From positions 1-64,000 of IMG/VR virus record IMGVR_UViG_3300022868_000009: a stretch of DNA of 64,000 bases; one strand, given 5' to 3'. Each line of letters starts with the position of its first letter. Positions within the stretch are counted from its first letter, which is position 1. A program made the position numbers and the translations under genes. Under the pieces are notes generated by a model, which was given only the letters and a program-made list of their open reading frames with translations, had not been told where the DNA came from and ran no database searches. This document shows positions 1 to 53,423 of the stretch, piece after piece.

Positions 1-236
1 AATTCTTCAGGTAATTTAGGTAATTCAGTTAATTGGTTATAATAACAATATAATCTTTTTAATCCTTTAGGTAATTCAGGTAATTTAGTTAATTGGTTAT
101 TACCACAATATAATCCTTCTAACCCTTTAGGTAATTCAGGTAATTTTTTTAAGAAAAAACCATCTAAATCTAATATTTTACCATCATCATAATCTTTAAT
201 TAATTTATTTTCATTGTATGTCTTTAAATACTTCAT
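1..236 (-). CDS. Leucine-rich repeat protein (bacterial 20-aa LRR, IpaH/SspH/YopM-like), partial; runs off the window start
   Basis: Manual translation from ATG at 236: MKYLKTYNENKLIKDYDDGKILDLDGFFLKKLPELPKGLEGLYCGNNQLTKLPELPKGLKRLYCYYNQLTELPKLPEE; paralog of the LRR gene at 20714-21253. Not in the ORF track. Confidence 0.85.
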   Translation of the reverse strand, partial: MKYLKTYNENKLIKDYDDGKILDLDGFFLKKLPELPKGLEGLYCGNNQLTKLPELPKGLKRLYCYYNQLTELPKLPEE

Positions 237-580
237 TAAATTATATTCATTTTACCAGCTTCTAAAAAAGCATTCATATCTAAATCTTCCAATTCAATAA
301 ACTCTTCAAATGAAAATTCATGAAAAATACCATTAAATCTAACTCTACTTTGATGTGATATTTCATCTTTTGTAGTATTAACAATCATCTTTTTAGGATT
401 AAAATTAACATATTTTGATTTTAAATGCTTGTATCCTATAATATCACTTGGCCAAACATAACCGTTATCAAAAAGTCTTTTTTGAACATATCTAGATTCT
501 TCTTCATTATTAACTCTAACAGCAAAAAAACATAAAATATCTGAACCAATTTCTTCTAAATATGTCTTTAAATATTTCAA
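236..580 (-). CDS. Hypothetical protein, MKYLKTY-family with C-terminal EAGKMNII motif
   Basis: 114-aa ORF (TTG start); its stop overlaps the next ATG (TAATG). Confidence 0.75.
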   Translation of the reverse strand: MKYLKTYLEEIGSDILCFFAVRVNNEEESRYVQKRLFDNGYVWPSDIIGYKHLKSKYVNFNPKKMIVNTTKDEISHQSRVRFNGIFHEFSFEEFIELEDLDMNAFLEAGKMNII

Positions 581-674
581 CTTTGTTTAATATTGTATTT
601 TACTTATATCAACTTATATATTTAATTTTCAAACTTAAATTTTTTAAATTCATATAAAAAGAAAAAGAATTAAT

Positions 675-983
675 ATGTCTACTTCAATTCCACATGGATG
701 GTATACAGATTCAACCGGAATATCTATATCAACTGGAACAACATTTACAAGTACTTACACAGATATTTATGAATCACCACCTACAACACTACAACAATTA
801 ATAGATTATTGTAATGATAGAAAATTAACTGAAAAAGATTTAGAATGGTTAGAATATAACGTACCTTTCACTATTAATATATATGAACAATTACAAAAAA
901 TTGAAAATAAATTAGATAAACCTTTTTCTGCGGTAGTTAAGCAAAAATTAAGAAAAATGAAATTGGATAGAGTTAAAGTTTAA
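675..983 (+). CDS. Hypothetical protein (S/T-rich N-terminus, RKMKLDRV C-terminus)
   Basis: 102-aa ORF with A-rich upstream region, opposite strand to its neighbours. Confidence 0.65.
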   Translation: MSTSIPHGWYTDSTGISISTGTTFTSTYTDIYESPPTTLQQLIDYCNDRKLTEKDLEWLEYNVPFTINIYEQLQKIENKLDKPFSAVVKQKLRKMKLDRVKV

Positions 984-988
984 ATATT

Positions 989-1477
989 TCATAATAACCC
1001 CAATTTTTCTCCTTCTATTTTATGTGCGTATTTTATAATAAATTTATCATAACTTAAATATTTCGCCACGTCATATATTAATTTTATAAAATCTTTTGAG
1101 TATATTTGTCCAGTATAATCTGTATAATCATTATAACTATTTATAATATTATTATAATCTGATTGATTAATTTGATTTTTATGTGTTATTAATTTACTTA
1201 ATGAAAAACCATAACCATGTTCAGCTATTCTAGACATAATTTTAATTTGTTCCAATTTTAATCTATCATCTATACTCCATGTAAATGTTTTAACATCACC
1301 AATACTGGTAATTAATTCATAATAATCTTCGAAAAGTTCTTCTTTTAATTCACGATCATGTATGTACTCTATATCTTGTTTTATGTGTTTAAAATGATGA
1401 TCATTTAAATCGTTTAATAAACCACTCAATTTTACAACTTCAGAATTTCTATCTTCATATGTCTTTAAATATTTCAT
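989..1477 (-). CDS. Hypothetical protein, MKYLKTYE / EGEKLGLL family
   Basis: 162-aa ORF carrying both terminal motifs. Confidence 0.8.
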   Translation of the reverse strand: MKYLKTYEDRNSEVVKLSGLLNDLNDHHFKHIKQDIEYIHDRELKEELFEDYYELITSIGDVKTFTWSIDDRLKLEQIKIMSRIAEHGYGFSLSKLITHKNQINQSDYNNIINSYNDYTDYTGQIYSKDFIKLIYDVAKYLSYDKFIIKYAHKIEGEKLGLL

Positions 1478-1761
1478 TACATTAAACCTAATTTACCACC
1501 CTCAACAATTGATTCAATATCACTAATATGTTCTGGGAATTTATAATTAAAATCATAATCATAATAATCTAAATTAATAAAATGAGATATGTTATAACCT
1601 AAAGATTTAACTGTCTCTTGTGCTGTACTTAGACTAAAATCATCTGAATATTGGTAATGTAATTTTCCGTTTATGTACATTGCTGCTTGATTAAAATCAT
1701 ACATAACAACAAAAATCACATCTTTATTCTCTTTATTTTCATATGTCTTTAAATATTTCAT
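1477..1761 (-). CDS. Hypothetical protein, MKYLKTYE / EGGKLGLM family
   Basis: 94-aa ORF carrying both terminal motifs; TAATG coupling to the next gene. Confidence 0.8.
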   Translation of the reverse strand: MKYLKTYENKENKDVIFVVMYDFNQAAMYINGKLHYQYSDDFSLSTAQETVKSLGYNISHFINLDYYDYDFNYKFPEHISDIESIVEGGKLGLM

Positions 1762-1787: not shown

Positions 1788-3440
1788 TTATATATTAAAA
1801 TTAAATTTTAAATTACCACTATCATATATTCTATATATTTCTCTTTCTATCATTATTTCATGTTCACTCTTATTTGAATCATATCCTTCACTAACCAAAA
1901 TATCTTTTCTAAAATTAAATCTGTATCTTCTAATACCATCTATTACATAGTGATAGTTTGGTTTAGTTTCATCAACAAAATCAAATCCTAATTTATAATA
2001 TAAATTACCCTTACTCCATGATCTATCAGCATAACTTATTATCTCTTTGAATTTATAATTTTTAATAAAATATTTAAATAATTTACTAGCACCACCAACA
2101 ACACTGACATTTAATTTATTGCAAAATCTCAATAACTCATAAATACCATTTTTACTTTTACCACCCAATGGCTTTCTAGTTTTACCAAAAGTCATTAAAC
2201 TTACCAATTCATTTTCATAATATAAACCAACTTTAACAGAAGAACCAACAAATCCTTGAATATGATTTTCTTTTAAAAATTGTCTAGATTCATTAATATT
2301 AACTTCTTTCAATTCACATTTCCTAGCATATATAATATTAGATTTACTTAGCAAGTTTAATATTCTAGATTTTATTATATCTTGTTTATATTTCCAATCA
2401 TCTTCATAAATATGAATAAGTTGTATATTTTTTTCTAGACATTTAATAGTTTTTTGATAATGATAATCATTTGATTTATTTAATTCATTATGCCAATATA
2501 CACCATTAAATTCAAAAGCTAATTTTAATTCTGGTAAATAAATATCTAATTCATAAGGTTTTAAAATTGTTCTATCGGAAATTATAATTTTATTATCATA
2601 GTTTTCTTTAATAAAATCTTGCAATTGTAATTGCATACCAGAAATATTATAACTATTTACTGGATTGCATTTTGTACATAGAATAGTTTCATATTTTATC
2701 CTATTATAAAGTAATACTGAAGATATCTCAAAATCATGCCCTTTTTCACAATTGAAAATATAAATCCCATTCTTTTTTATTTCTTTAATACCAAATTCTT
2801 TATATTTTTCTAATATATTCTTATTTTTAGTAGTTTTTATTTTTTCTTTAACATTTTCTAATTGAGAAGTATGTTCAACACCATATTTTTCCAAATTATT
2901 TTTAATTGTATTTTCTTTAACTTTATCACTTTTAGAAGAAATATCTGTGCCATATTTTTCAAGACATGTTTCTCTACTCTTTCCTCTTATTTCTTCTGAT
3001 TGCATTAAATATTCAACACCGTATTTTTGTTTATTTGTCTTCTTTTGTATTTCTTGTATTTCTTTATTTTTTAAGTGATGTGTTACACCATATTTTTCAA
3101 GACATGTTTCTTTGATCTTTTCTTTAATTTCCTCTAATTGAAAAACATTGTCAACACCATATTTTTTTTGTAATGTATTTTTTGTTTTATGTTGTTTACA
3201 TTTACTACAGTAATAATTTGTTTCTCCATTCGAAGTTATCTTATTATAATCACTATAAACAATATCTTTTTCAATTTTACAATGAAAACATCTAACTTTA
3301 ATTTTTTGCCTAGATTGTAAAGGTAATTCTGAAATAAATATTTCAATTATATCACCAGATTCACAATCATAGCCTAATTCTTTGTACCTACCCACATTTT
3401 TATTTGATAATTTTATTTTAATTTTCCTGTTGACAATCAT
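1788..3440 (-). CDS. Hef-like putative homing endonuclease (Zn-ribbons, EKYGV repeats, DUF559/Vsr-like nuclease domain)
   Basis: CxxC motifs, repeated KYGV units, ELDIYLPELKLAFEFNGVYWH nuclease motif, C-terminal GGASKLFKYF...ISYADR domain; paralog of 8010-9752. Confidence 0.75.
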   Translation of the reverse strand: MIVNRKIKIKLSNKNVGRYKELGYDCESGDIIEIFISELPLQSRQKIKVRCFHCKIEKDIVYSDYNKITSNGETNYYCSKCKQHKTKNTLQKKYGVDNVFQLEEIKEKIKETCLEKYGVTHHLKNKEIQEIQKKTNKQKYGVEYLMQSEEIRGKSRETCLEKYGTDISSKSDKVKENTIKNNLEKYGVEHTSQLENVKEKIKTTKNKNILEKYKEFGIKEIKKNGIYIFNCEKGHDFEISSVLLYNRIKYETILCTKCNPVNSYNISGMQLQLQDFIKENYDNKIIISDRTILKPYELDIYLPELKLAFEFNGVYWHNELNKSNDYHYQKTIKCLEKNIQLIHIYEDDWKYKQDIIKSRILNLLSKSNIIYARKCELKEVNINESRQFLKENHIQGFVGSSVKVGLYYENELVSLMTFGKTRKPLGGKSKNGIYELLRFCNKLNVSVVGGASKLFKYFIKNYKFKEIISYADRSWSKGNLYYKLGFDFVDETKPNYHYVIDGIRRYRFNFRKDILVSEGYDSNKSEHEIMIEREIYRIYDSGNLKFNFNI

Positions 3441-3565: not shown

Positions 3566-5329
3566 TTAAATAAGTACTCCATTTGTGTCTGTAACCTGTA
3601 TTTCCATGAATTGTTTCCAAGGAAAAAAGCCTATGTCAGCTATGGCATATCTTGAACGAATTAACATTCTTGGTGCCCAAGTTGCCTCTGAAATTAAACT
3701 AATAGACTGAGCCATTAGATAAGGAATGAAAATCAAACCTGGTTGATCAACTGAATTCTTTCTTCCTAAAAAGACTCTGTTATCGTCCCATCTCATATAA
3801 GGATCTACATAGATAGCTATGTTACCAATATTACCCATTGGGTATAATTGACCATTTGTATTCAATTTACCTGCGTTAACTGGATTGATAGTATAACCTG
3901 CAATATCTTGAATAACTGATGCAACGTTTCCGTTAGTTACTAAATATTGAGCTGGTCCTACTCTACCATCTGTTGCGATAAAGTTTGAAGCATTATTGAT
4001 TTTAGCAATAAGTTTTCTTTGGATTGAATGAGTAGTTTCTCCTCCTGGTGCAGGACCGAATCCTGTAGCACCAATATAAGTGTCTACGTCAAAATCAAAC
4101 TTAGGAGTACCTGTTGAATCAACTGGAGTTGTTGCTGAAGCTCTGTTTTGAGCAGCTAATTCTCTAATCTTAGCAACAATTTGTTTAGAAATTGTTTGTG
4201 TAAGTTCGTTAATTAATACTGACTCAAGTTTCTGAACAATGTCCATACCTGTTGAAGCTTTAATATCTTCAATTTGAGTTCTCTTAAGAGCTGATGTAAT
4301 CTCGATATCACCTACTTGTACTGACTTAGTAAATACGTCAGGACCGATAACACCTGGATATGTGTTTTCATCTACTTCTCTTAACATTGGGTTTTTATCA
4401 TCCCATCCTGCTACGAAACCAGGAATATGATCTTCCATTAATGAAACTAGTTCAATAGATGTTGTACCAGTAAAATCATAATTTGTAGTTGTTAATAATT
4501 CAGCACCTTGTAACAATGTTGTTACTGAATCAGTACTAGAAACATCAAATGTGTTTCTTTTAGCTACAGTTGGATAAGCACCTGAAACAGGAGCACCAAT
4601 TTGTTTAAATGTACGGAACATTGGTTTACCATCTATTCTTGAAAAACCTAAAAATTCTAACCAACCTTGACGACCTTCAGTAACTGTAGGTTCAATCAAA
4701 CTTGTTGTAGCATCGAAAGTTCTGGTTTTATCTGTATCATCATAATATGTGTCAACAGTTGTTGTACCTGATATTGAGAAGAACATTCTTGATGTTAATC
4801 CACCAATTGTTTCAGTTACACTTGCTGTTGCCATATCAGCTGCAAGATCAGCTCTTAACAATGTATGTTGAGCTGCGATGTTAGTGTCTATTTTAAACAC
4901 CAATGGTCTTTCGTCTCTATCAGTACCATCTGCATTATTGTCATATTTAAAATCGACGAATAATAATTCGATACGTGGAGAAGAAGAAGGTTTAACTGCT
5001 AATAGGTCAAGACCAATTGTTTGAGCAGCAATCTTCATTGATACTGGAAGTAAGTTTTGTGCGATATCACCTGATCCATCAACTGATTGTTTCACGCCAC
5101 TGTCAGCACCATTCCATACAGCACCTGGAGTTCCCCATGGTGTTGGAGGAGCAACTGCGCCCATACCATTTAAGTTACCAAGTGTTGAATAAGAAATATT
5201 CTCATTCATTTGGTGCATTTCGGCATATTCTGCCATCCATGTTCTCTTGTCTTCATCTTCTACTCTTAGAGTATCTAGAACAGGAGCCCATTTTTTTAAC
5301 GCTTTTGATTTGTCTACTATAAAATTCAT
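3566..5329 (-). CDS. gp23: Major capsid protein (T4 gp23-like)
   Basis: KKWAPVL N-terminus, AAQTIGLDLLAVKP, FIPY, PRMLIRSRYA C-terminal motif; directly downstream of the protease/scaffold gene. Confidence 0.9.
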   Translation of the reverse strand: MNFIVDKSKALKKWAPVLDTLRVEDEDKRTWMAEYAEMHQMNENISYSTLGNLNGMGAVAPPTPWGTPGAVWNGADSGVKQSVDGSGDIAQNLLPVSMKIAAQTIGLDLLAVKPSSSPRIELLFVDFKYDNNADGTDRDERPLVFKIDTNIAAQHTLLRADLAADMATASVTETIGGLTSRMFFSISGTTTVDTYYDDTDKTRTFDATTSLIEPTVTEGRQGWLEFLGFSRIDGKPMFRTFKQIGAPVSGAYPTVAKRNTFDVSSTDSVTTLLQGAELLTTTNYDFTGTTSIELVSLMEDHIPGFVAGWDDKNPMLREVDENTYPGVIGPDVFTKSVQVGDIEITSALKRTQIEDIKASTGMDIVQKLESVLINELTQTISKQIVAKIRELAAQNRASATTPVDSTGTPKFDFDVDTYIGATGFGPAPGGETTHSIQRKLIAKINNASNFIATDGRVGPAQYLVTNGNVASVIQDIAGYTINPVNAGKLNTNGQLYPMGNIGNIAIYVDPYMRWDDNRVFLGRKNSVDQPGLIFIPYLMAQSISLISEATWAPRMLIRSRYAIADIGFFPWKQFMEIQVTDTNGVLI

Positions 5330-5351
5330 TTTTATAATTCTTTTTTTTTAT

Positions 5352-5359
5352 TATATATT
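5352..5359 (-). promoter_or_regulatory. Putative late promoter AATATATA upstream of the capsid gene
   Basis: The same octamer recurs within about 70 nt upstream of many structural and CTS-bearing genes. Confidence 0.6.
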
Positions 5360-5466
5360 TCCCTTTAAAAGTCTATTTTTTCCATTTTTGACTGTTTTTC
5401 AAGCCTTTTTTATCTGAAACCTTTGTCTTTATGAGGTTATATAAATATTATTTTTTAACGACCTAA

Positions 5467-7902
5467 TTATATATTTTTAAGTCTGTTATAGAATCTGTCT
5501 AATTGATCTTCTGATAATGTCGTATTATCAACTAGTTGGTTCTTTTGTAGAACTTGTTTAGATTCTTTAATTAATGAATAGTTTTCCATTTTTCTACTAT
5601 TCCAAAAAGCTTCCATTTTTGCAGGAGTATCTAAATTAGGATACAATTTAGCAGTTAATAGTATGCTTTTCTTTTGGTCATTTTCTAGACCTTCATATAT
5701 TGGTTGTAAATCACTAGGGATATTTTCTACCAATACATCTTCAAAAGTTTTCTTAACACTTAGAGCATCAGTCATAGCTTTAAGGACTTGATTTTCTGAA
5801 TAATACGTGCTTTCGTTTAATGCAAGTTTTACTTTTTCTCTATCTTCGTCAGTTAAAGAATGATAAGATTTTTTATTTCTCTCTGTTAAGAATTGTAAAA
5901 AATGAGGCTCGCTATTTGCAGCTACTTTACGTTTTTTAGTTTCAGTAATAAGTTTGCCAATTTGAGATTTCAATGAATCTTCATTTTCTAATATTTTATC
6001 ACCAATAATGATGATTTTACTTTCGTGTATTTGTAATTCTTCTTGATTGTCTGTTAATTTTAAAAGTACCATACCATCGTTAGGCATGTAAGCCATAACT
6101 TCACCTGGTCTATCATTAAATGTTGCAGTCATTCCAGGAACAATTTGATCACTAACTACTTCTTGTCCTTGTACACTCACAGGTGCAACACCTATACTAG
6201 TATCAACTACTGGTGGTTGTGCTTGTACATCAATTTGAGTCTGTGCTTGAACTGGTTGTCCAAATTCATCAACTTCAGCTTGAGCTTGAGCATCTTGTTG
6301 AACAAATTCTTGTCCTTGTTGAGCTTGAGCTTGAACATCTTGTACTTGTGCATCAGCGTCTAATTGTATTGGACTTTGAATTGCATCAGTTGTTTGTGCT
6401 TGAGTTTGATTTTGATTTTGAACAAAATCAGTATCAGTATCATTATCATAAAATCTTTCTACATTTTGAACTTTCATATTAGGCATTTGAGCACCTTGAT
6501 TTTCGTTCAGTTCACCACTATTTAAATGTTCAACAGTTTGGTCTAAAGATTCTGCAAGATAATTTTGATATGCTTGAGTATCAGCAACATTTTCTGCAAT
6601 ATATTCACTATAAGCGATATTGTTATCTACATGTTCTGCAATATATTCACTATAAGCGATATTGTTATCTACATGTTCTGCTACATACTCAGTATAAGCG
6701 ATATTGTTATCTACATGTTCTGCAATATATTCTGCATATTCAATATTGTTATCTACATGTTCTGCAATATATTCTGCATAAGCAATATTTTTATCAAGAT
6801 TTTCTGCTACATATTCTGAATAGTCGATAGATTTTTCAATTGATTCAGCTAAATAATCTGAAAATTGAATATTCTTATCAACGTTCTCAGCGATATACTC
6901 AGAAAAGTCGATATTTTTGTCTAATGTTTCAGCGATGTATTCACTGTAATCAATAGTTTTGTCTAATTCTTCAGCAATGTATTCTGAATAGTTGATAGAC
7001 TTTTCTAATTCTTCTGCTAAATAGTCATTGTGTTTAACAAGACCTTCTGTTTTAGCTTTCAATGTTGAGTTTTCATTAACTACATGTTGAATCTGATCAG
7101 CTAAATAATCTAAATAGCCTGTTACAGAAATTTGTTGTTCGTTTAAATTTTCTAGAAGTTCAGCCATTTTCATCATTCTCTCAGGTTCTACTCCACCTTT
7201 GGCATTTTCTTCAAAGAAACGTTGAACTGATTCAATTTGTTCAGTTAAATAATTTGAATACTCAATCATTTGATTTTTTGTTACAAATTCGTTGTTGTTA
7301 TTCATTTCTAAGAAATCATTAAATTTTGACGAATCTGATAAGTCATAAATACGAAAGTTTGAACTTTCATTAAAACCTAAAGACTCGTTGAGTGATTTTA
7401 ATTCCATTTTTGCAGAACTAAAACCTGGATCTGCAACGGCATCATATGTAAAAAGTTTCTTTATAGCCACCGTACCATTACTTTCAGTAATACCAGCCGC
7501 TCTAGAGCTAACAAAAATAGGGCAATTGTCATCGACTAATGCTTTAGCCTCTTTGCCCCAATGTGTATTAAGTAACCTAATTGTACCTTCTACTCTATTC
7601 GCTTGTGGATTATGAAAAATTGATTCCAATGTATGTGAAACTCTTGCAAGTGATGTATCGAACACGTCAGGATGATCGAATTCACCATATATGACACCTA
7701 AGTTTTTTTTACGTTCATTAAGTTCGCCTAAATGCGGTAAAAACTTATCAGAAGTATAAATTCTTTCATTACGATTAACTACATCAAATTCGGTAAAAAT
7801 ACCTCCTAAAATATATTCTTTCTTTTGAGAACTTTGCTCCTGAATGAGTTTTAAACCATCAGTCGAATTTTCAATGATCAAAACCGGTTTGTTTCCATTC
7901 AT
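5467..7902 (-). CDS. gp21: Prohead core protease (gp21-like) fused to a scaffold/core domain
   Basis: N-terminal GEFDHPD and FVSSRAAG catalytic motifs, YDAVADPGFSSA; followed by acidic 14-aa repeats, a Q-rich linker and a helical C-terminus. Confidence 0.9.
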   Translation of the reverse strand: MNGNKPVLIIENSTDGLKLIQEQSSQKKEYILGGIFTEFDVVNRNERIYTSDKFLPHLGELNERKKNLGVIYGEFDHPDVFDTSLARVSHTLESIFHNPQANRVEGTIRLLNTHWGKEAKALVDDNCPIFVSSRAAGITESNGTVAIKKLFTYDAVADPGFSSAKMELKSLNESLGFNESSNFRIYDLSDSSKFNDFLEMNNNNEFVTKNQMIEYSNYLTEQIESVQRFFEENAKGGVEPERMMKMAELLENLNEQQISVTGYLDYLADQIQHVVNENSTLKAKTEGLVKHNDYLAEELEKSINYSEYIAEELDKTIDYSEYIAETLDKNIDFSEYIAENVDKNIQFSDYLAESIEKSIDYSEYVAENLDKNIAYAEYIAEHVDNNIEYAEYIAEHVDNNIAYTEYVAEHVDNNIAYSEYIAEHVDNNIAYSEYIAENVADTQAYQNYLAESLDQTVEHLNSGELNENQGAQMPNMKVQNVERFYDNDTDTDFVQNQNQTQAQTTDAIQSPIQLDADAQVQDVQAQAQQGQEFVQQDAQAQAEVDEFGQPVQAQTQIDVQAQPPVVDTSIGVAPVSVQGQEVVSDQIVPGMTATFNDRPGEVMAYMPNDGMVLLKLTDNQEELQIHESKIIIIGDKILENEDSLKSQIGKLITETKKRKVAANSEPHFLQFLTERNKKSYHSLTDEDREKVKLALNESTYYSENQVLKAMTDALSVKKTFEDVLVENIPSDLQPIYEGLENDQKKSILLTAKLYPNLDTPAKMEAFWNSRKMENYSLIKESKQVLQKNQLVDNTTLSEDQLDRFYNRLKNI
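6541..7032 (-). repeat. About 12 tandem 42-bp (14-aa) repeats, consensus EYIAEHVDNNIAYS
   Basis: Visible directly in protein and DNA (e.g. gcaatatattcactataagcgatattgttatctacatgttct repeated). Confidence 0.9.
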
Positions 7903-8009: not shown

Positions 8010-9752
8010 ATGTTTTTGACAAAAAAATTAGCAGTTACAATAAACCCTTCAAATATCAAACATTTTAAAAAATATTTTGATAATATAGAAGTTAAAGATG
8101 AAATCGTTGTCAACATTGATCAATTAAATAAAGGTAGTCAGTTCATAATTAATGTTCAATGTGATCAATGTGGTCTTAAAAAAGAACTCAAATACAAAAA
8201 TTATTTAGGTTATGGTTACATTAATGGTGATTATTTATGTAGATCATGTAAATTAAAGAAAAATAATCAAGAAAAATATGGGGTTGACAACGTTTTTCAG
8301 CTTGAGGAGACAAAAGAAAAATCTAGAAAAACATGCATGAAAAAATATGGTGTTGAATACATTTCCCAATCAAATAAAACAAAAGATAAAATAAAACAAA
8401 TAAGCATAGAAAAATATGGTGTTAATCATTTTACACAAAATGATAATATTAAAAACAAACAAAAGCAAACAAATTTAGAAAAATATGGTGTAGAAAATCC
8501 ATCACAATCCATTGAAATTAAGAAAAAGAAAGAAAATAATTGGTTAATTAAAAATGATGAAGAGAAGGAATCAATTCTTAAAAAAAGAATTAAAACGAAT
8601 CAAATTAAATATAATTCTGATCATATTTTCACAAATGATTTTTTTAAAGAAAGAATAAAACAAACGAATTTAGAAAAATATGGTGTAGAAAACCCATCAT
8701 TAAACAAGAAAGTATCACAAAAAATAATATCTTCTTTAAAAGAAACACTTTTATCTAAACAATTTGAAAACATTGATAATTTAATAAATGTTCAAGGAGA
8801 TATTTTTTTAATTAAATGTGATGCATGTGGTGATGAATTTAAAATATTAAATAGTCTTTTTTATAAAAGAAGAGAATCAAACACATTAATTTGTACAAAT
8901 TGTAACCCTGTGTCTAAAAATGTATCTGGCAAAGAAATACAATTGTTGAATTTTATTAAAGACAATTACAATGGGACAATTATTGAAAACAGCAAAAAAA
9001 TAATATCACCACTAGAATTAGATATTTATCTTCCAGATTTAAATTTAGCATTTGAATTCAATGGTATCTATTGGCATTGTGAATTATACAAAGATAATAA
9101 CTATCATTCAAACAAGACTAAAATGTGCAATAATAAAAATATAAATCTTTTTCACATCTTTGAAGATGATTGGGTTTATAAACAAGATATAGTAAAATCT
9201 ATGATTATTAACAAAATAAATAGAACAACAAATAGAATATATGCACGAAAAACAACATTAAAAATAATAACAAATAATACATTAATTAAAGAATTTTTAA
9301 ATAGTAATCATATACAAGGTTATGTTGGTTCTTTTATTAAACTGGGATTATTTTATAATGATGATATTGTAAGTTTAATGACATTTAAAAATGTTAAAGA
9401 TGGTTATGAATTAAACAGGTTTTGTAATAAATTAAACACAAATGTAATTGGTGGTGCAAGTAAATTATTTAAATATTTTACAAAAAATTACTCATTTGAT
9501 AAGATAATATCATTCTCGAATAATGATTACTCAGAAGGAAATCTATATAAAACACTAAATTTTAGATTAGATAAAAAAATAAAACCGGATTATTCTTACA
9601 TTAAGAATGATAAAAGGGAACATAAATTTAATTTCAGGAAGAAAAAATTATCTCAAAATTTCAACATTTTAAATAAAACAGAACATGAAATATGTTTTGA
9701 AAATAATATTTATAGAATATATGACAGCGGCAAATTAAAATGGGTTTATTAA
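8010..9752 (+). CDS. Hef-like putative homing endonuclease
   Basis: Same architecture as 1788-3440 (EKYGV repeats, ELDIYLPDLNLAFEFNGIYWH, GGASKLFKYF); lies between the portal and protease genes on the opposite strand. Confidence 0.75.
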   Translation: MFLTKKLAVTINPSNIKHFKKYFDNIEVKDEIVVNIDQLNKGSQFIINVQCDQCGLKKELKYKNYLGYGYINGDYLCRSCKLKKNNQEKYGVDNVFQLEETKEKSRKTCMKKYGVEYISQSNKTKDKIKQISIEKYGVNHFTQNDNIKNKQKQTNLEKYGVENPSQSIEIKKKKENNWLIKNDEEKESILKKRIKTNQIKYNSDHIFTNDFFKERIKQTNLEKYGVENPSLNKKVSQKIISSLKETLLSKQFENIDNLINVQGDIFLIKCDACGDEFKILNSLFYKRRESNTLICTNCNPVSKNVSGKEIQLLNFIKDNYNGTIIENSKKIISPLELDIYLPDLNLAFEFNGIYWHCELYKDNNYHSNKTKMCNNKNINLFHIFEDDWVYKQDIVKSMIINKINRTTNRIYARKTTLKIITNNTLIKEFLNSNHIQGYVGSFIKLGLFYNDDIVSLMTFKNVKDGYELNRFCNKLNTNVIGGASKLFKYFTKNYSFDKIISFSNNDYSEGNLYKTLNFRLDKKIKPDYSYIKNDKREHKFNFRKKKLSQNFNILNKTEHEICFENNIYRIYDSGKLKWVY

Positions 9753-12960: not shown

Positions 12961-13101
12961 ATGATTAAAGAAATAGGAGAAATGAAAGTTGCTAATATGT
13001 TAGCAAGTAAATTTTTAAAAGATTTTAATCCAGTAATTGATGAATATATAGTTCAATATATCGGAGCGGAAACAGAAGGTGAAAAAATGGGATTAATGTA
13101 A
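12961..13101 (+). CDS. 46-aa protein with C-terminal EGEKMGLM motif
   Basis: Manual translation MIKEIGEMKVANMLASKFLKDFNPVIDEYIVQYIGAETEGEKMGLM*; TAATG overlap with the next gene; below the ORF-track cutoff. Confidence 0.6.
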   Translation: MIKEIGEMKVANMLASKFLKDFNPVIDEYIVQYIGAETEGEKMGLM

Positions 13102-13586
13102 TGAAAAATCTAAAAACTTTTGAATCATATATAATAGACAAATATAAAGAACGGGGAGAAAATAGTGAAAAAGAACGTGAAATTCATGGAGAAATACAAA
13201 AACTTCAAAACAAAATCTACATTTTACAAAAAAAAGAAAGTGAATATGTTAGAAAAAATGATAAATCTAATTTTTTTTTAAATGAAGAATATTTTAAATT
13301 AAAAAATATCTTACCATTCGAAGATAATGGTCGATTTTTAATTTTCACATTCGATAAACTTTGTACAATAGAAAATAAATCATACCAAGATTTAAGAATA
13401 AAGAAAAACAACACAAAACGTCTTTCTAATTTTAGTTTAGGTATTTCTTCAAATAAAAGATCTGATACTCATGACCCAAGTACAGTTGTAACAGATTTCA
13501 AAGTTCAAAAACAATACAAAATATTAGATTGGATACATGTAAATTATCCAGAATATTTTCAAGCAAATAAATTAGGACTGTTATGA
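13101..13586 (+). CDS. Hypothetical protein, MKNLKTFE / QANKLGLL family
   Basis: 161-aa ORF carrying both terminal motifs. Confidence 0.8.
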   Translation: MKNLKTFESYIIDKYKERGENSEKEREIHGEIQKLQNKIYILQKKESEYVRKNDKSNFFLNEEYFKLKNILPFEDNGRFLIFTFDKLCTIENKSYQDLRIKKNNTKRLSNFSLGISSNKRSDTHDPSTVVTDFKVQKQYKILDWIHVNYPEYFQANKLGLL

Positions 13587-14086
13587 AATATTTAATAACA
13601 TATAATGAATTAACAGGTTCAGCTAGTTATCCATACGAATTAGTTAAAACAAAAAATATAATCTTAGATGATGATGAAACAGTAACAATGATAACATATA
13701 AATTTAAATCTAAAGGTGGTAATATATATACAAATATCCTTCAATTTAAAGGAGATGATAATCATATGTTTTCTGTAAATTTTCAAGATGAAGATAGTTA
13801 TTTTAAAGAACTTGATAAAGATGGTATTTATGATATTAATTATTTAAATACAAATAAAGGTGATGCTGTCATGATTATTTCTACTGTTTGTAATATTATT
13901 CAAGATTATTATGAAAAACATAAAGATCATCTATATTTATTTGGGTTTACTGTAACAGAACCTAAAAGATTAAATATATATAAATATTATCTTCAAAACA
14001 TGTTTCCTGAATGGAAATTAGAAGAAGAAGAAATTAAAGATAATATTCATCGTTTAACTTGTACTAAAGATATAATTTTCGATTAA
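13583..14086 (+). CDS. Hypothetical protein with MKYLITYNE N-terminus
   Basis: 167-aa ORF; weak similarity by eye to the C-terminal part of 28712-29359. Confidence 0.75.
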   Translation: MKYLITYNELTGSASYPYELVKTKNIILDDDETVTMITYKFKSKGGNIYTNILQFKGDDNHMFSVNFQDEDSYFKELDKDGIYDINYLNTNKGDAVMIISTVCNIIQDYYEKHKDHLYLFGFTVTEPKRLNIYKYYLQNMFPEWKLEEEEIKDNIHRLTCTKDIIFD

Positions 14087-20393: not shown

Positions 20394-20726
20394 ATGATAG
20401 TTTCATTTAATGAATTTCTTAATGAAAATTTTATTTCTGGAAGATTTCTCACCAATATTAATGGCAGAGAAATTGTACTTAAACTTCAAGTAGAATATAT
20501 AAATTTATTAACAAAAGTTTATCTTATAAAAGATAATAAAGTTTATGATAATTTATCTATTAATTTACCTGATTCACGTAAACTTAGAGAAGGTGAATTC
20601 TTTTTAAATCCTGATATTAATTCTAATATTGTAAAAGAATTAACAAAACAAAACTTTATAACAAAACAAAAAACAGAATCGATTGCAGGTGATAAAAAAA
20701 CAACAGCATACAAATTAAATATTTAA
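20394..20726 (+). CDS. Hypothetical protein with CTS-like N-terminus (MIVSFNEFLNE)
   Basis: 110-aa ORF; AATATATA at 20361-20368. Confidence 0.7.
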   Translation: MIVSFNEFLNENFISGRFLTNINGREIVLKLQVEYINLLTKVYLIKDNKVYDNLSINLPDSRKLREGEFFLNPDINSNIVKELTKQNFITKQKTESIAGDKKTTAYKLNI

Positions 20727-21253
20727 AGACATATAGTGAAAATCAATTAATTAATGACCATTTAAGTGATGATGGTAAAACATTAGATTTAACTGGTTTA
20801 AATCTAACTGAATTACCTGAATTACCTAAAGGGTTAAAAACATTATATTGTTATAATAACTATTTAACTGAATTACCTGAATTACCAAAAGGGTTAAAAG
20901 AATTATTTTGTAATAATAACCAATTAACTAAATTACCTGAATTGCCTAAAGGCTTATTAAAATTAGATTGTGAAGATAACAAATTAACTAAATTACCCGA
21001 ATTACCTAAAAATTTAGAAGAGTTATATTGTGAAAATAACCAATTACCTGAATTACCTGAATTACCTAAAGGATTAAAAAGTTTATATTGTAATCATAAC
21101 CAATTAACTAAATTACCTGAATTACCAAAAGGGTTAGAATATTTATTTTGTAATTATAATGAATTACCTTATGATGATTTAGATGGTTATTGGGAATGGT
21201 TTTGGAAAGAAAACCCAGACCTTCATAATGCAAATAAAATGGGATTATATTAA
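20714..21253 (+). CDS. LRR protein (about 8 x 20-aa LPELPKGL repeats) with IKYLKTYSE start and NANKMGLY end
   Basis: The frame of ORF 20942-21253 is open back to 20696; at 20714 ATT AAA TAT TTA AAG ACA TAT gives IKYLKTY, matching the paralog at 1-236; implies a non-ATG start (ATT/ATA) or a mutated ATG. Confidence 0.8.
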   Translation: MKYLKTYSENQLINDHLSDDGKTLDLTGLNLTELPELPKGLKTLYCYNNYLTELPELPKGLKELFCNNNQLTKLPELPKGLLKLDCEDNKLTKLPELPKNLEELYCENNQLPELPELPKGLKSLYCNHNQLTKLPELPKGLEYLFCNYNELPYDDLDGYWEWFWKENPDLHNANKMGLY

Positions 21254-22795
21254 ATGAAATATTTAAAAACATACAAATTATTTGAAAACCCTAACCATAT
21301 TTATAAAAATATTAAAGGAGAATGGATTGATTTATCATTCGAAGATGATGATGCAATTCCATTTTTTTATGATATTGAATTAAATACTATATTTTTAGGT
21401 CAATCAAAAATTGATGGTATATACTATATACACCCCGAATTAATACAAATTGTCAATAAACATAGATCACAAAAAGGGTACGCACCATTAAGCATTTATG
21501 ATACAAATCTATTATACTCTGGTAGAATTTGGAAAGGTAGAAAAGTAATATCTTTTTGGTCATATCCAGATAAAGAAATGTTTGACATTATAATAAATAA
21601 ATTAGAAGATAAATCTTCTGTAAGAATATGGGGTAATGATTGGTTAATTGAAGTAGTTATAGGTGATGATAATATATCAATTAAAAATTTACCTTACAAT
21701 TGGAAAGATAACAACGCAATGGAAAAAGGTATAATTAAAATGGTACCTGTTGATGAATATGATAAAAGTGAAAACTTTGATAGAGAAGATCATATTAAAT
21801 CACCATTAAATAAATCTAAAAAACCGACATACTATAAAACATCTAAACACAAACCAAAAAATATCACTAATATTGAATATAAAGGAATGATGAAAAATAT
21901 ATATCAAGAAAGTATATTATCATTTGGAGAATATATTAAAGAAACTCCTGATTATATTTATAATAGAAATACTGAGTGGGAAATGGAATGGTCTGATGAT
22001 GATGCAAGACCTTTTCAATATTTAACTAATGATCTTTTTTCCGGTGAAAAAAGTGGTGAATTTCATTTAGGTAATTATGGCGACAATCATCCAGATATGT
22101 TTCCTTCAGGTGGATTATATTCAGGTAGAATATGGGATGACCCATCAAAACAAATAATATCATTTTGGGATTATCCACCAAATAAAGAAGAATTCAAAAA
22201 AATTATAGATCAATTAGAAAGAAAAACTGGGCATAAGATTTGGAATAAAGATTGGAAAATAGAAGTTTTAGTCGATAAAAACATTAATAGATGGGATATT
22301 GAAGCCGGTGATGATATGACTTCAGATTTAGAATCAATAATAATACCTGTTGTAGATTATACTGGTAGTGAAGACACTCCTAAAGAATTATTAAATATGC
22401 ATTTAAAAGATAAATCTAAACTCAAAGTTCCAACTGGTTTTGGTTCTAAACATAAACATAAATATCAAACAAATCTTGAACCGATTCGTTATAAAAATAT
22501 GATGAAAAATGTATTTACTGAAAATGTAGACACAAAACCAAAAAGAAAGAAGAAAAAAGTAATATACGAAGCAATTATCAATGATATTAAAGGAAATATT
22601 ATATCATATATAACTAATTTTAAAATGACTAAATTAGAAGAAAAGTGGATGACTTGTAATGTAAAAGGATACAAGAAAAAGAAAGTTGAAGGATACAAAA
22701 CTAAAGTTTGGGTTTATTTTGAAGATAAACTTAAATTAAATACAAAATGTTTTAAAAATGGTAAAATAGAATTACTAGTAATAGATGATAAATAA
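21254..22795 (+). CDS. Hypothetical protein with an internal tandem duplication and MKYLKTY N-terminus
   Basis: Two copies of YSGRIW...ISFW.YP..E.F..II..LE......IW..DW.IEV. Confidence 0.8.
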   Translation: MKYLKTYKLFENPNHIYKNIKGEWIDLSFEDDDAIPFFYDIELNTIFLGQSKIDGIYYIHPELIQIVNKHRSQKGYAPLSIYDTNLLYSGRIWKGRKVISFWSYPDKEMFDIIINKLEDKSSVRIWGNDWLIEVVIGDDNISIKNLPYNWKDNNAMEKGIIKMVPVDEYDKSENFDREDHIKSPLNKSKKPTYYKTSKHKPKNITNIEYKGMMKNIYQESILSFGEYIKETPDYIYNRNTEWEMEWSDDDARPFQYLTNDLFSGEKSGEFHLGNYGDNHPDMFPSGGLYSGRIWDDPSKQIISFWDYPPNKEEFKKIIDQLERKTGHKIWNKDWKIEVLVDKNINRWDIEAGDDMTSDLESIIIPVVDYTGSEDTPKELLNMHLKDKSKLKVPTGFGSKHKHKYQTNLEPIRYKNMMKNVFTENVDTKPKRKKKKVIYEAIINDIKGNIISYITNFKMTKLEEKWMTCNVKGYKKKKVEGYKTKVWVYFEDKLKLNTKCFKNGKIELLVIDDK

Positions 22796-23156
22796 ATACG
22801 AAAAATTCATATATGAACGTTTAGGACAGAATGAAGGTGATATTAATATCGTTGGTATTCATGTTAATGATAAAAATCTAGATGTAATACTTGAAGAAAT
22901 ATCAAATTATTTTAACTTGAAAAGCTTTTTAAATGCTGATTTTGTAAGAAAAAGTGCATCTAGAGAATTGTTTTATGTTAATATATATCCAGTCAATAGT
23001 AATTATAATTACTTTTGGAATAGTATAAATGAATATGATAATATCTTTAATGATTTGGATGAACCTAATACATATAAACTAGAAGATTGGTTTGAAAAAT
23101 ACTTAAATGTTACATTAGAAGAATTTGTAGAAGCTAAAAAATTAGGACTATTATAA
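22785..23156 (+). CDS. Hypothetical protein, CTS-like start / EAKKLGLL end
   Basis: 123-aa ORF. Confidence 0.75.
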   Translation: MINKYEKFIYERLGQNEGDINIVGIHVNDKNLDVILEEISNYFNLKSFLNADFVRKSASRELFYVNIYPVNSNYNYFWNSINEYDNIFNDLDEPNTYKLEDWFEKYLNVTLEEFVEAKKLGLL

Positions 23157-35921: not shown

Positions 35922-35981
35922 TATAATAATTATATTTTCTTCTATATATTAAAATACATATTGATAAATTTTATAATTATG

Positions 35982-36054
35982 TAACGCAGATCAGAATCGA
36001 ACTGACAGCCTTTGGGATATGATTCCAATGCTCTACCTATTGAGCTACTGCGTT
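35982..36054 (-). tRNA. tRNA-Met/Ile2 (CAT)
   Basis: Cloverleaf AACGCAG / GCTC-GAGC D stem / TTGGA-ATCATAT-CCCAA / GTCAG TTCGATT CTGAT. Confidence 0.75.
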
Positions 36055-36385
36055 ATTTATTTTTAATTCTATCTAATTTAATCTTTCGATCAATTCTTAT
36101 AATTTTCTTTTTAACTTCTTCATCTTTAAAATTTGGATGTAAATATAAATTACACATAACATGGAAAACATCTGGATTTATATCACCATTTTCATCTAAA
36201 CATGGTTTTAATATATCCATCATTATATATGTTCTAATAGATGTATAATTATTTTGAAATTCATAACGTTTACAAATAAAATCTATATAACTATCAACAT
36301 CAACAGGTATTATTTTATTCTCAAATTCGTCAATTAAAACATCAATTATATATTCATCATTAAAACCATTACTATCATCCGTCAT
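36053..36385 (-). CDS. Hypothetical protein (RKIKLDRI C-terminus)
   Basis: 110-aa ORF. Confidence 0.6.
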   Translation of the reverse strand: MTDDSNGFNDEYIIDVLIDEFENKIIPVDVDSYIDFICKRYEFQNNYTSIRTYIMMDILKPCLDENGDINPDVFHVMCNLYLHPNFKDEEVKKKIIRIDRKIKLDRIKNK

Positions 36386-36567
36386 CCTTTACTCTACTAA
36401 TTTAACTTTTCTTTGATACTGGTATTAAAATTCTACTATTTTCCATATAACTTATATTTCAAATAATATAATATGTTTAAAAATTTTGTATTTAAAAAGA
36501 ACCGTATCAATAATAAATTAATACGGTTTCAGTAGAGGGTAACTAATATAATTGGTAAGATAAAAAA

Positions 36568-36759
36568 CTATTCTTGTTCCTTTTTAGCTTTAAGGTTACC
36601 CTTAGTTTTTCCTTTTACTTCTTTTTCTTTCTTGTCTGGTCTAACTAATTCTTTCCAGATGTTTTTAGGACAATAATTATATCCGTTTGCTAACTTTTCA
36701 TAAACTTCCTTTTCTTTTACTCTAATTGGAAGGTCGTCTCCGAGTCTCATTGTTTTCAT
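36568..36759 (-). CDS. Small basic hypothetical protein
   Basis: 63-aa ORF. Confidence 0.55.
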   Translation of the reverse strand: MKTMRLGDDLPIRVKEKEVYEKLANGYNYCPKNIWKELVRPDKKEKEVKGKTKGNLKAKKEQE

Positions 36760-36767
36760 AAGCTAAT

Positions 36768-37277
36768 TTAATTAATTTTTATAATATTTGATTTTTCTAT
36801 TTTTATTGATTTTTCTATTTTTAATTTTTCTATTGGTTTTTCTTTTTTAATATTATTAAAATCTATAACCTTCAATGTTATAGTATCTGTTTTTTGTTTA
36901 AATGTAAATTCATGCTCACCTTTACCATAATGGTTTATTTTTACAAATAAATTAAAAACTGTATTTTCATTAATTTGTCTAGATTCATTTACTTTAAAAA
37001 TATATTTAATTTGTTTACCATCAAACTCATATTCAGCATAAAAATCTTTGTTTTTAGAATCAAGATAAACTACAGGTTTAATTTCACCATCATATGCAAC
37101 AAATTCATTTATATCTGCAAATGGACCAACAATTGCAAAACCAACAATAAATATAACTATTGATGCAAATACACACCATGCTTTCGTTAAAGATTTTTTA
37201 GAAAATATTGATAATAAAATAAATATCATTAATAATCCAGGACTAATTATCCATGCAAGTGTTAATAGTAAACTCAT
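36768..37277 (-). CDS. Hypothetical membrane protein
   Basis: 169-aa ORF with two N-terminal TM-like helices. Confidence 0.65.
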   Translation of the reverse strand: MSLLLTLAWIISPGLLMIFILLSIFSKKSLTKAWCVFASIVIFIVGFAIVGPFADINEFVAYDGEIKPVVYLDSKNKDFYAEYEFDGKQIKYIFKVNESRQINENTVFNLFVKINHYGKGEHEFTFKQKTDTITLKVIDFNNIKKEKPIEKLKIEKSIKIEKSNIIKIN

Positions 37278-37354
37278 TTTTTATATTTTTTTAATTTGTA
37301 TAAATATACAAAAATTTCAACTTAAAAAAAATTTTCGATTCTAAATTTTAATTG

Positions 37355-37427
37355 TAGGTATAGATGGATTTGAACCACCGACTTCTACTGTATAAGAGTA
37401 GCACTCTGACCCCTGAGTTATATACCC
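37355..37427 (-). tRNA. tRNA-Ile (TAT)
   Basis: GGGTATA / ACTC-GAGT / CTACT-CTTATAC-AGTAG / GGTGG TTCAAAT CCATC; close paralog of tRNA-Ile(GAT) at 39044. Confidence 0.85.
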
Positions 37428-37804
37428 ATGTCTAATCGTTTAAAAATTTTCCTTTCAATTGTTTCTATCATATAATTAGAATAAAAAAACAAATCGTACA
37501 TATTCTTTACCTCTTTTACATTATAATAATCACTATATTCATATATTTGATAAGTGATGCCTGTACCTGTTTTATAGGATGATGTATAACATATATATTC
37601 TTTATTTTTGTATTTTTTATATCTTACACTATGCAACGTGTTTATTATATAACCATTTTTAATATTTTTATAAACACTTTTAACATTTTTAATATTTTTA
37701 AAATCAAACTCATTAAATATACGTTGAAAAGCATGCTTAGGACTTAAAACCTTATTTTTTTCAAAATAATGTTCAAAACCAATTTGATATTTGTTTTTTC
37801 TCAT
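37418..37804 (-). CDS. Hypothetical protein
   Basis: 128-aa ORF; its 3' end overlaps the tRNA 5' end by 10 nt. Confidence 0.5.
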   Translation of the reverse strand: MRKNKYQIGFEHYFEKNKVLSPKHAFQRIFNEFDFKNIKNVKSVYKNIKNGYIINTLHSVRYKKYKNKEYICYTSSYKTGTGITYQIYEYSDYYNVKEVKNMYDLFFYSNYMIETIERKIFKRLDMGI

Positions 37805-37842
37805 ATTATTTTTGTATGTTTACGACAAAGTTTTCAATACTT

Positions 37843-37924
37843 AATATCTGATTCGAACCTACGTTGGGGCGTTTACCTCATCAGATTAACAGTCTGACAC
37901 CTTCGACCACTCGGACACAGATCA
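37843..37924 (-). tRNA. Degenerate tRNA (GTT anticodon, long variable arm, 3' T-stem strand missing)
   Basis: CCGAGTGGTCGAAGG D arm, TCAGA-CTGTTAA-TCTGA, GTAGG TTCGAAT then directly CAGAT with no CCTAC. Confidence 0.55.
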
Positions 37925-37932
37925 ATTTATTA

Positions 37933-38646: not shown

Positions 38647-38677
38647 TATATATTAAATTCATTTTTTTGTTTATTTG

Positions 38678-38750
38678 AGGGGAAACTAGGACTCGAACCT
38701 AGGACACCTTGATTAACAATCAAGTACTCTACCAACTGAGTTATATCCCC
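38678..38750 (-). tRNA. tRNA-Asn (GTT)
   Basis: GGGGATA / ACTC-GAGT / CTTGA-TTGTTAA-TCAAG / CTAGG TTCGAGT CCTAG. Confidence 0.85.
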
Positions 38751-38831
38751 TGGTATAGGGCTAAAACCACTACCCTATCTTTGAAAGTTTACAAATCTAC
38801 CTGTGGTTAGGTCATAGAACTGCTCCTACAG

Positions 38832-38903: not shown

Positions 38904-38915
38904 ATAAATTACATG

Positions 38916-52376: not shown

Positions 52377-53423
52377 TTACATTATTCCTAATTTCTGTGC
52401 GTTATATATTGATTGTATATTATTAATTATGTTGTTTAATTCTTTATCATCTAAATTTTTAATTTTATTAGAAAAATCTCTAGAAGCAAACCATTTATAA
52501 CATTTGCTTTTTGGTTTTGCAAATTCCACTAAATATTTAAGTCTAGAATAACTTTTCATTTTATATTGCCATAAAATATCATCAAAATGTTCTTTTAGTA
52601 TATCAACATTATCTTTATAAACAACATTAACCCAAAAGAAATCTTCTGGTAATTTAGATTCATTATCCCAATATCTATCAATTTCAAATTCTAAATCATT
52701 CTGGAGTTGTTGGTAATCTTTTTTAGATTCATATTCTTGCGATTGATATTCAATATCATATGTATAAGGTAAATTATTACCAACTAATCTAAAAAAATCA
52801 CCTATACTATTAATATCTTTATCTTTTATATATTTTAAAAGTGCATCATATTCTACTGTGACACTTACACCATTTTGATATTTACCTGTATAAATAAAAT
52901 CATAATAAAATGGTTGTTCATTTGAGATTTCTTTCTCAATTAATATGGATAATGCTTTTTCTTTCACAATAGATAGTGAATATTTAAACGAATCTTTAAT
53001 TTCTTCAAGGTCAAAATTTTCAAAGAAAACTGCAAATTCTCCCTCATCAACATTATTATTTACATAATCAATCTTATTATCAAGATATTTTGCGAAATTT
53101 AAAACTTTTTGTATTTGTTGTGTAGTCATATAATGATGAATATAATTTACCTCATCATCATCAATATAAAATTCATAACCATATGAATTTGCAAATCTTA
53201 ACCATTCAATAACACCTCTTTCAATTTCCAATAAATCTTCAAAATCATCTATTTTAATATCAAATGATAATTCATCTTTTTCAACTTCTAAATAACCGTG
53301 ATTTTCTTGAATATCTAAATAATTTGAGATTTCTTCTGGTTTCTCTTCACCAGACATAATTTTCTCAACTACTTCTTTTAGGATAGAATTTTTAATATCT
53401 TCAAAATATTTAATATATTTCAT
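52377..53423 (-). CDS. Hypothetical acidic protein, MKYIKYFE / NAQKLGIM family
   Basis: 348-aa ORF with both terminal motifs; AATATATA at 53429-53436. Confidence 0.8.
   Translation of the reverse strand: MKYIKYFEDIKNSILKEVVEKIMSGEEKPEEISNYLDIQENHGYLEVEKDELSFDIKIDDFEDLLEIERGVIEWLRFANSYGYEFYIDDDEVNYIHHYMTTQQIQKVLNFAKYLDNKIDYVNNNVDEGEFAVFFENFDLEEIKDSFKYSLSIVKEKALSILIEKEISNEQPFYYDFIYTGKYQNGVSVTVEYDALLKYIKDKDINSIGDFFRLVGNNLPYTYDIEYQSQEYESKKDYQQLQNDLEFEIDRYWDNESKLPEDFFWVNVVYKDNVDILKEHFDDILWQYKMKSYSRLKYLVEFAKPKSKCYKWFASRDFSNKIKNLDDKELNNIINNIQSIYNAQKLGIM

Follow-up and report, generated by a model that had tools for sequence, protein, structure and literature searches.

What keeps the stop/start junctions that recur between the small genes of an uncultivated huge T4-like phage so alike? 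They lie in the first 64,000 nucleotides of the IMG/VR virus record IMGVR_UViG_3300022868_000009 (the window, whose numbering is used below), where a gene ending in KLGL[LM] or a similar run meets a gene beginning with MKYLKT. The initial annotation took this roughly 40-nt junction as one unit, kept as recombination homology for the gain and loss of cargo genes, as proposed for the internal-protein loci of T-even phages. Here, we show that the junction is not one ~40-nt DNA element: it arises where two separate protein tags, both short, happen to abut, a tail at the C-terminus of one protein and a leader at the N-terminus of the next. Our best explanation of the whole, which we hold at even chances, is that the junction is a by-product of two modular address or processing tags and of gene overlap, the leader being similar in kind to the capsid-targeting sequence (CTS) of phage T4.

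Two tags that meet at a junction

The window begins a single virus contig of 344,634 bp (GC content 25%). A second assembly, a 348-kb IMG/VR record, matches the contig over 259,159 bp at 100% identity and adds 89 kb, which gives a phage of at least 434 kb. A further record of 166.6 kb, in which the same motifs recur and whose terminal TnpB gene is identical to that of the contig, has only 28 of 255 open reading frames (ORFs) in common with the contig and probably represents a different part of this genome or of one very close to it. The public runs that contain phage sequence are salt-lake and marine metagenomes. All motif counts were taken over the ~600 kb attributable to the phage, with 962 non-overlapping ORFs, unless the contig or the window is named.

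The junctions are real and non-random. The window has 9 copies of the DNA of the leader start (a 17-mer, up to 2 mismatches allowed) where 0.24 would be expected, a count that none of 100 shuffles reaches. The junctions can be read directly in the sequence: GGKLGLM, a TAATG stop/start overlap and MKYLKTYE at 1477; GEKMGLM, TAATG and MKNLKTFE at 13101; NKLGLL, an ATGA overlap and MKYLITYNE at 13583; and NKMGLY, a TAA abutting ATG and MKYLKTYK at 21254. At 236 the TAATG overlap and the downstream MKYLKTYNE are as first described; the KLGL[LM] assigned to this junction is not there, and KMNII closes the upstream gene as a degenerate tail.

The leader, M-[K/R]-[Y/H..]-[L/I]-K-T-[Y/F] (consensus MK[YH]LKT[YF](x)E), starts 76 of the 962 ORFs, and the tail, [K/R/Q/E/N/D]-[L/M/I]-G-[L/I/M/V]-[L/M/Y/I/F/V], ends 130. 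Both are carried by 46 ORFs, the tail only by 84 and the leader only by 30, so that ~160 ORFs (~17%) are tagged. The first Glu stands at position 8 or 9 in 66 of the 76 leaders, as compared with 88 of 701 controls (13%) for both positions together. The tail extends over ~14 residues, which read [D/E]-[L/I]-x-x-hydrophobic-hydrophobic-[E 48%, N 19%, Q 11%]-[A/G/S 93%]-x-K(73%)-[M/L]-G-L-[L/I/Y/M/F]-COOH. Among contig ORFs of at least 60 residues, 38 have GLL as their last three residues, and at the other end MKYLK (12) and MKHLK (7) are the most frequent opening pentapeptides; a degenerate DNA pattern for the tail plus stop codon has 44 matches on the contig against 2 for the reversed control.

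These numbers do not bear out the junction as one unit. The halves occur apart in 114 of the 160 tagged ORFs, and a leader gene comes directly after a tail gene in only 29 of 130 cases; these 29 places are the "junctions". The overlap itself is not specific to them. ATGA and TAATG overlaps are a packing habit of the whole genome, found in 35 and 30 gene pairs that involve a tag and in 57 and 32 untagged pairs, respectively, and 64 of the 130 tail genes overlap or abut the next start. The stop/start offset at a junction is -3, 0 or +1, with no intergenic DNA, and the repeat lies inside coding sequence. A tail-bearing gene followed by a leader-bearing gene, combined with the habit of overlap, would yield a ~40-nt junction as a by-product. 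What looks like a conserved DNA "junction" can, in other words, result from gene overlap together with two protein signals that are independent of each other, and caution is needed in reading one as an element in its own right.

The tagged genes of the window, with the features that lie among them, are as follows.

3..236, minus strand: 5' part of a leucine-rich repeat (LRR) gene cut by the contig start; leader MKYLKTYNEN; Pfam LRR_4, E=6e-12; member of the LRR family with both tags
236..580, minus strand: 114-residue array gene with a TTG start; leader LKYLKTYLEE, degenerate tail EAGKMNII; phrog_17589, E=2.8e-8
675..983, plus strand: single-copy ORFan of 102 residues on the opposite strand within the array, with its stop codon inside the orphan leader start as read in reverse complement
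979..992, minus strand: orphan leader start ATGAAATATTTAAA, reading MKYLNFNS and then a stop
989..1477, minus strand: 162-residue array gene; leader MKYLKTYED, tail IEGEKLGLL; no family match above threshold
1477..1761, minus strand: 94-residue gene, first of the array; leader MKYLKTYEN, tail VEGGKLGLM; TAATG overlap with the next gene
12961..13101, plus strand: 46-residue ORF with the tail only, TEGEKMGLM
13101..13586, plus strand: 161-residue gene with both tags; leader MKNLKTFES, tail FQANKLGLL
13583..14086, plus strand: 167-residue gene with the leader only, MKYLITYNE
20714..21253, plus strand: LRR gene with both tags, IKYLKTYSEN ... NANKMGLY; ATT at the start position in place of ATG, possibly a pseudogene or a rare-start gene
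21254..22795, plus strand: 513-residue gene with the leader only (MKYLKTYKLFEN), abutting the TAA of the LRR gene; no Pfam family
22785..23156, plus strand: 123-residue gene with the tail only, VEAKKLGLL; the next gene is convergent and without a leader
52377..53423, minus strand: 348-residue gene with variant tags; leader MKYIKYFED, tail NAQKLGIM

Selection on the protein sequence

Codon choice at K-5, L-4, K2, Y3/H3, L4 and Y7/F7 is that of the genome (p 0.25 to 1.0), and every one of the four Gly codons occurs in the tail, as do five of the six for Leu. Because synonymous codons at most positions follow genome usage, conservation of the motifs is at the protein level, and we conclude that both have been selected as protein sequence. 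At the DNA level the junction copies are 66% identical over 45 nt, and the longest exact run that copies have in common has a median of 11 nt (90th percentile 20, maximum 35). Free synonymous sites at most positions and exact runs of this length speak against the proposal that the junction is kept as DNA homology for recombination.

Unrelated cores between the tags

When 11 residues were trimmed from each end and the proteins were clustered with phmmer at 1e-3, 157 tagged proteins fell into 118 clusters, the largest being the LRR family with 14 members. Profile-profile comparison (hhalign) of eight multi-member families, tags trimmed, gave less than 2% probability for 26 of 28 pairs; 2 of 28 reached ~72-74%. 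The cores are thus shown to be mostly unrelated (LRR, ankyrin, many ORFans), and the tagged proteins span LRR solenoids with a variable number of repeats, an ankyrin-repeat protein, a 46-residue peptide and proteins of 348-513 residues. Most of them belong to no Pfam or PHROG family, and in a word-index search of 5.8 billion proteins the 94- and 114-residue array proteins matched themselves only. In the gene at 236-580, phrog_17589 aligns residues 21-78 to profile positions 6-63. Since this match starts only at residue 21, the leader (~15 residues) looks as if it had been added to a pre-existing domain.

The LRR family, with 13-14 copies, carries both tags around a 20-residue unit, LPELPKGLxxLxCxxNxLT. 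Its paralogues (20714-21253 and 12 others) have 2 to 9 units in proteins that are otherwise 70-77% identical, and this varying copy number suggests that units may be gained and lost frequently. An AlphaFold2 model of the protein at 20714-21253 has a mean predicted local distance difference test (pLDDT) score of 92; residues 1-5 score below 50 and are the sole low-confidence part, and the tail is modelled as a short terminal helix followed by a 4-residue coil (pLDDT ~80). Many of the tail-only proteins are of similar size (median 111 residues) and lie in tandem. Among ORFs of 70-250 residues, tagged proteins are more acidic than untagged ones, with a median isoelectric point (pI) of 5.2-5.5 versus 6.1 (Mann-Whitney p=1e-6).

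Phylogenetic range of leader and tail

The closest deposited phages are uncultured huge phages of 630-735 kb, with capsid proteins 49-64% identical, followed by the Lak phages. The tail had 0-2 matches in five related huge-phage records, equal to the control, and in IMG/VR and the JGI metagenome collection tail arrays were found only in records of the phage under study. The leader had 5 and 9 matches in relatives of 640 kb and 676 kb (control 0), where MK[Y/H]LKTFE starts proteins of 70-313 residues without the tail. The tail is thus confined to the phage studied here, and the leader is found in distant huge-phage relatives as well. Because their phylogenetic ranges differ, the two halves of the junction have different histories.

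The unrelated metagenome contig Ga0214164_1003935 (6.8 kb, GC 34%) has three small ORFs that end in RNIK[L/N]GLI or RNKKNGLL, two of which start with MKHLKLYES. A different lineage could thus have two tags in an arrangement like the present one.

The leader as a possible capsid-targeting tag

The internal proteins of T-even phages have only an N-terminal leader in common (PMC12373910, PMC3012670), which makes the likeness to their loci drawn by the initial annotation an apt one. In T4, each of these proteins is cut once, next to the 10-residue leader MKTYQEFIAE, by the gp21 protease (PMC8442874), and the capsid-targeting leader binds the prohead core (PMC7411985). We think that the leader described here may be a tag of the same kind, capsid-targeting and removed by a protease. 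It would direct small accessory or effector proteins into the prohead core as the T4 CTS does, and a gp21-type prohead protease, encoded 4 kb away, would cut it after the conserved Glu at position 8 or 9. The tail, a short helix and then G-L-L, could act as another short linear motif, by which the proteins dock on a common partner; about half of them have a hydrophobic-hydrophobic-E|[A/G/S] site in front of it, where the same protease could also cut. Arrays would then grow by tandem duplication and core replacement, and the conserved ends may occasionally offer short homology for recombination as a consequence of their conservation rather than its cause.

The phage has the head genes that such a pathway would use. 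Its head module is T4-like, with a gp20 portal (Pfam Portal_T4, E=5e-67), a gp23 capsid protein and an S77 protease in the order portal, protease-scaffold, capsid. The features that enter the comparison are these.

3566..5329, minus strand: major capsid protein, gp23-like (Pfam Gp23, E=6e-27; match to T4 gp23* in the PDB)
5467..7902, minus strand: prohead protease (S77, gp21-like) fused to a scaffold-like region, 811 residues (Pfam Peptidase_S77, N-terminal, E=1.3e-4)
1788..1797, minus strand: promoter-like TAATATATAA box upstream of the array; a TAATATATAA box also precedes the major capsid gene

The scaffold-like region has ~12 tandem repeats of 14 residues (42 bp) centred on EY[IV]AE, at 6587-7014, and then a Gln/Ala/Val-rich stretch. 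The repeats resemble the EFIAE end of the T4 leader, and the whole protein looks like a gp21-gp22 fusion that may carry a string of protease sites; its S77-type protease is our candidate for the enzyme that processes the tags. In an alignment of 28 relatives, the capsid protein of the whole clade has in its N-terminal region an invariant EYAEMH.MNEN segment and no later Glu ahead of the conserved core; this segment is a candidate maturation site. Its EYAE...MNEN also resembles YNEN, the commonest leader ending. The 8-mers ATATATAA and AATATATA are 10-11-fold enriched upstream of phage ORFs; ATATATAA lies within 60 nt upstream of 129 of them, mostly at -30 to -15, including the capsid gene at 3566-5329 and the first array gene at 1477-1761. 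We read the leader as capsid-targeting on the strength of its length and Glu end, the K-T-Y-x-E pattern, the low pLDDT of the leader, the EY[IV]AE repeats, the EYAE/MNEN segment of the capsid protein and the common AATATATAA box.

The AATATATAA box is seen, for example, at 5330-5375 in front of the capsid gene and at 1788-1797. It recalls the T4 late TATAAATA and is a candidate phage promoter.

Like the T4 CTS, the leader is short (here 8-9 residues), ends in Glu, and is found on small, unrelated, non-essential-looking proteins from variable loci, in a phage whose portal, capsid and prohead protease are of the T4 type; in both cases a conserved leader offers homology for gene exchange. Unlike T-even phages, which have ~3-10 leader proteins, this phage has 76, its leader reads MKYLKTYxE rather than MKTYQEFIAE, and its C-terminal tag, on 130 proteins, is without a counterpart in T4. 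The giant phages SPN3US and phiKZ offer a second comparison, with many head-internal proteins that are processed after Glu by the prohead protease (AXE motif) and whose propeptides are proposed to target the prohead (PMC7411985, PMC10052503). Their propeptides differ in being long (tens to >100 residues) and family-specific, with no common C-terminal tag described.

Short C-terminal peptides of small and hydrophobic residues serve as cargo-loading signals of encapsulins and as the coat-binding ends of phage scaffolding proteins. The tail is similar to these as a short C-terminal peptide that could dock cargo on an HK97-fold shell or core, a likeness in general character, and differs from them in consensus.

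Several observations weigh against a capsid-targeting role. The Peptidase_S77 match of the 811-residue protein is weak and under the Pfam curated cutoff, and the majority of the tagged genes are at a great distance from the head module, in an accessory region of 70 kb (contig positions 298-371 kb). K-T-Y-x-E occurs in both leaders at an offset of three residues, and is a 5-residue pattern too short for statistics. About half of the leaders end Y/F-x-E and the rest T-[Y/F]-E, which places Thr at P3 and not the Leu/Ile of the T4 rule. At tail position -8, Glu is found in no more than 48% of the proteins, with Asn in 19% and Gln in 11%, and cleavage there cannot therefore be general. Two codon preferences go beyond a protein-level explanation, that of the tail for GGA at Gly-3 (70% versus 29% in the genome) and that of the leader for ACA at Thr6 (91% versus 53%). 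Finally, packaging and cleavage of the tagged proteins are what we infer from sequence and from the likeness to T4. A predicted complex of the protease domain (residues 1-215) with the 94-residue tagged protein scored 0.00, which is evidence neither way.

The most far-reaching form of the capsid-targeting reading is that two removable tags, a clade-inherited leader and a lineage-specific tail, load well over a hundred small effectors (LRR, ankyrin and ORFan proteins) into the capsid for co-injection. We offer this as a tentative possibility that probably goes too far. If true, it would be by far the largest known repertoire of ejected proteins, and the tail would be the first capsid-targeting tag described at the C-terminus of tailed-phage proteins. 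Should the tags be address labels, they would also offer a simple rule, read from sequence, by which injected or co-regulated accessory proteins could be recognised in huge phages that have not been cultivated, a class of proteins otherwise invisible to homology searches. As address labels, they would further provide two portable peptides for loading foreign proteins, a use to which the T4 CTS has already been put in engineering. Literature searches on the two motifs, and on capsid tags at the C-termini of jumbo-phage proteins, returned nothing relevant, and in the literature searched we found no description of two portable terminal tags on ~17% of ORFs.

Recombination and turnover of array genes

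The strongest alternative is the one first proposed, that the ~40-nt junction is conserved as DNA and serves as homology for shuffling cargo cassettes, like the PeSL regions or the flanks of T-even internal-protein (ip) genes. We consider it unlikely as the reason for conservation, and much of what it draws on is sound. The arrays are hyperplastic, that is, tightly packed small genes with unrelated cores between conserved ends, and scars lie at or just after the leader motif. The initial annotation had noticed an orphan start, ATGAAATATTTAAA, downstream of the gene at 989-1477, and this is indeed present at 979-992; it overlaps the TGA of that gene and the stop codon (981-983) of the plus-strand ORF at 675-983, and is the scar of a lost or displaced downstream array gene. 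Three more truncated leader starts, of 9, 24 and 27 codons, are found elsewhere in the phage, and the non-ATG starts at 580 (TTG) and 20714 (ATT) are counted among the scars. The opposite-strand ORFan at 675-983, which lies between two copies of the leader motif, occupies the place where an array gene is expected, consecutive leader copies being 412, 485 and 284 nt apart. It has no match in Pfam or PHROG and no paralogue in the 600 kb of the phage. The LRR paralogues, whose neighbours differ, are spread over many arrays, recombination could be started by homing-endonuclease and TnpB genes in the vicinity, and repeat-mediated modular shuffling has precedent in T4-type phages (PMC2839356, PMC4122927).

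The 13-mer TTTAAATATTTCA had been seen as a direct repeat flanking the ORFan as an insert. The copies at 567-579 and 979-991 are there, and the flanking role is not borne out, since the same 13-mer is also found at 1464-1476, 1748-1760 and 21255-21267 (5 copies in the window against 0.14 expected). What recurs here is the core of the leader's coding sequence, which every array gene start contains, and we rejected it as a target-site duplication around an insert.

Several results count against recombination as the reason for the conserved junction. The halves are mostly apart and have different phylogenetic ranges, synonymous sites have not been homogenised, and the exact runs are as short as described above. 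Over the 259 kb in which contig and second assembly are 100% identical there was no structural variant between them, and contigs of four other runs, which tile 117-1767 and contain the ORFan unchanged, showed no differences. In this material no indel polymorphism was seen in the arrays, and no mini-circles were observed. Three joints considered as deletions (212>1741, 152>1741 and 184>3441) have sides 18-23 nt long and were rejected as cross-matches between paralogues; in translation the first gives MKYLKTYSENK, from a paralogue of the LRR family. No arrays were found in the capsid-gene neighbourhoods of relatives (69 loci), and the other junction-bearing contigs belong to the same phage or are non-overlapping parts of it.

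The scars, the ORFan in the place of an array gene and the homing-endonuclease genes that flank the array nevertheless make it credible that genes turn over at the conserved ends, as they do in PeSL regions and T-even ip loci (PMC2839356). The PeSL cassettes are similar in having short repeats between small accessory ORFans in hyperplastic regions, where indels are expected to end in the repeats. They differ in that their repeats are intergenic promoter and stem-loop terminator DNA; here the repeat is coding, conserved as protein and without intergenic space. Cassette shuffling, then, may describe what happens in the arrays, and it does not account for the conservation of the junction, whose halves are independent and constrained as protein.

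Other explanations

A second alternative, likewise improbable in our judgement, keeps the tags as address labels and replaces the capsid with another hub, such as a clamp, a chaperone, a protease, or a secretion or degradation machinery, by which effectors would be recruited, timed or destroyed together. The extreme C-terminal position of the tail, its invariant Gly and its hydrophobic last two residues are typical of short docking motifs, the acidity of the tagged proteins would suit mimics or inhibitors, and the accessory region that holds most of their genes is away from the head genes. C-terminal pentapeptides that bind the sliding clamp are of the type Q-L-x-L-F, to which K/Q-[L/M]-G-L-[L/F] bears a superficial likeness. 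Positions -4, -2 and -1 fit that consensus; position -5 does not, being Lys in 95 of 130 tails (73%) and Gln in 7 (5%), and we rejected the clamp-binding pentapeptide on this ground. Among ten larger genes of the accessory region there was no candidate for a reader (e.g. a PDZ or S41 protease), and the Glu boundary of the leader and the T4-type head machinery fit capsid targeting better.

The tagged proteins might instead form one very divergent paralogous superfamily, with the ends as the best-kept structural elements of a common fold. The similar size and tandem arrangement of the tail-only proteins, the existence of small tandem families, the two family pairs with high hhalign probability and the terminal helix of the modelled tail are in keeping with this. 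We find it hard to believe, and rejected it on the 26 negative profile comparisons; the same ends also occur on solenoids, an ankyrin-repeat protein, the 46-residue peptide and proteins of 348-513 residues, and each tag is found without the other.

Least probable is a translational-coupling signal in the RNA, made of a Shine-Dalgarno-like GGA in the Gly codon and an unstructured A/T-rich start. GGA at the tail Gly does rise slightly, to 77%, when a gene follows directly, as against 59% when none does, and about half of the tail genes run into the next start. The bias stays without a downstream gene, however, and the triplets GGA, GAG and AGG seldom stand upstream of a gene in this genome (no upstream position has them in more than 4% of 559 ORFs), which led us to reject a Shine-Dalgarno reading of GGA. 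The K, the L/M and the two L residues are kept as amino acids, their synonymous sites being free, and an Rfam scan found no family match at the junctions.

Neighbouring features

Genes for DUF7487, a Hef-like homing endonuclease, flank the array and split the head module. One (1788-3440, minus strand) lies between the capsid gene and the array and another (8010-9752, plus strand) between the portal and the protease; at least four further copies elsewhere in the phage have ~70-75% DNA identity to the window copy. Outside the window, a TnpB/IS605 OrfB (Cas12f-like) gene stands at the contig break, from 344,636 onward, and is 100% identical to the end of the 166.6-kb record (165429-166595), which has two more, diverged TnpB copies. 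This gene is probably the cause of the assembly break. The window also holds a cluster of 10 tRNA genes on the minus strand at 35981-42442, for Met, Ile (two), Asn, Glu, Leu (two), Cys, Gln and Asp.

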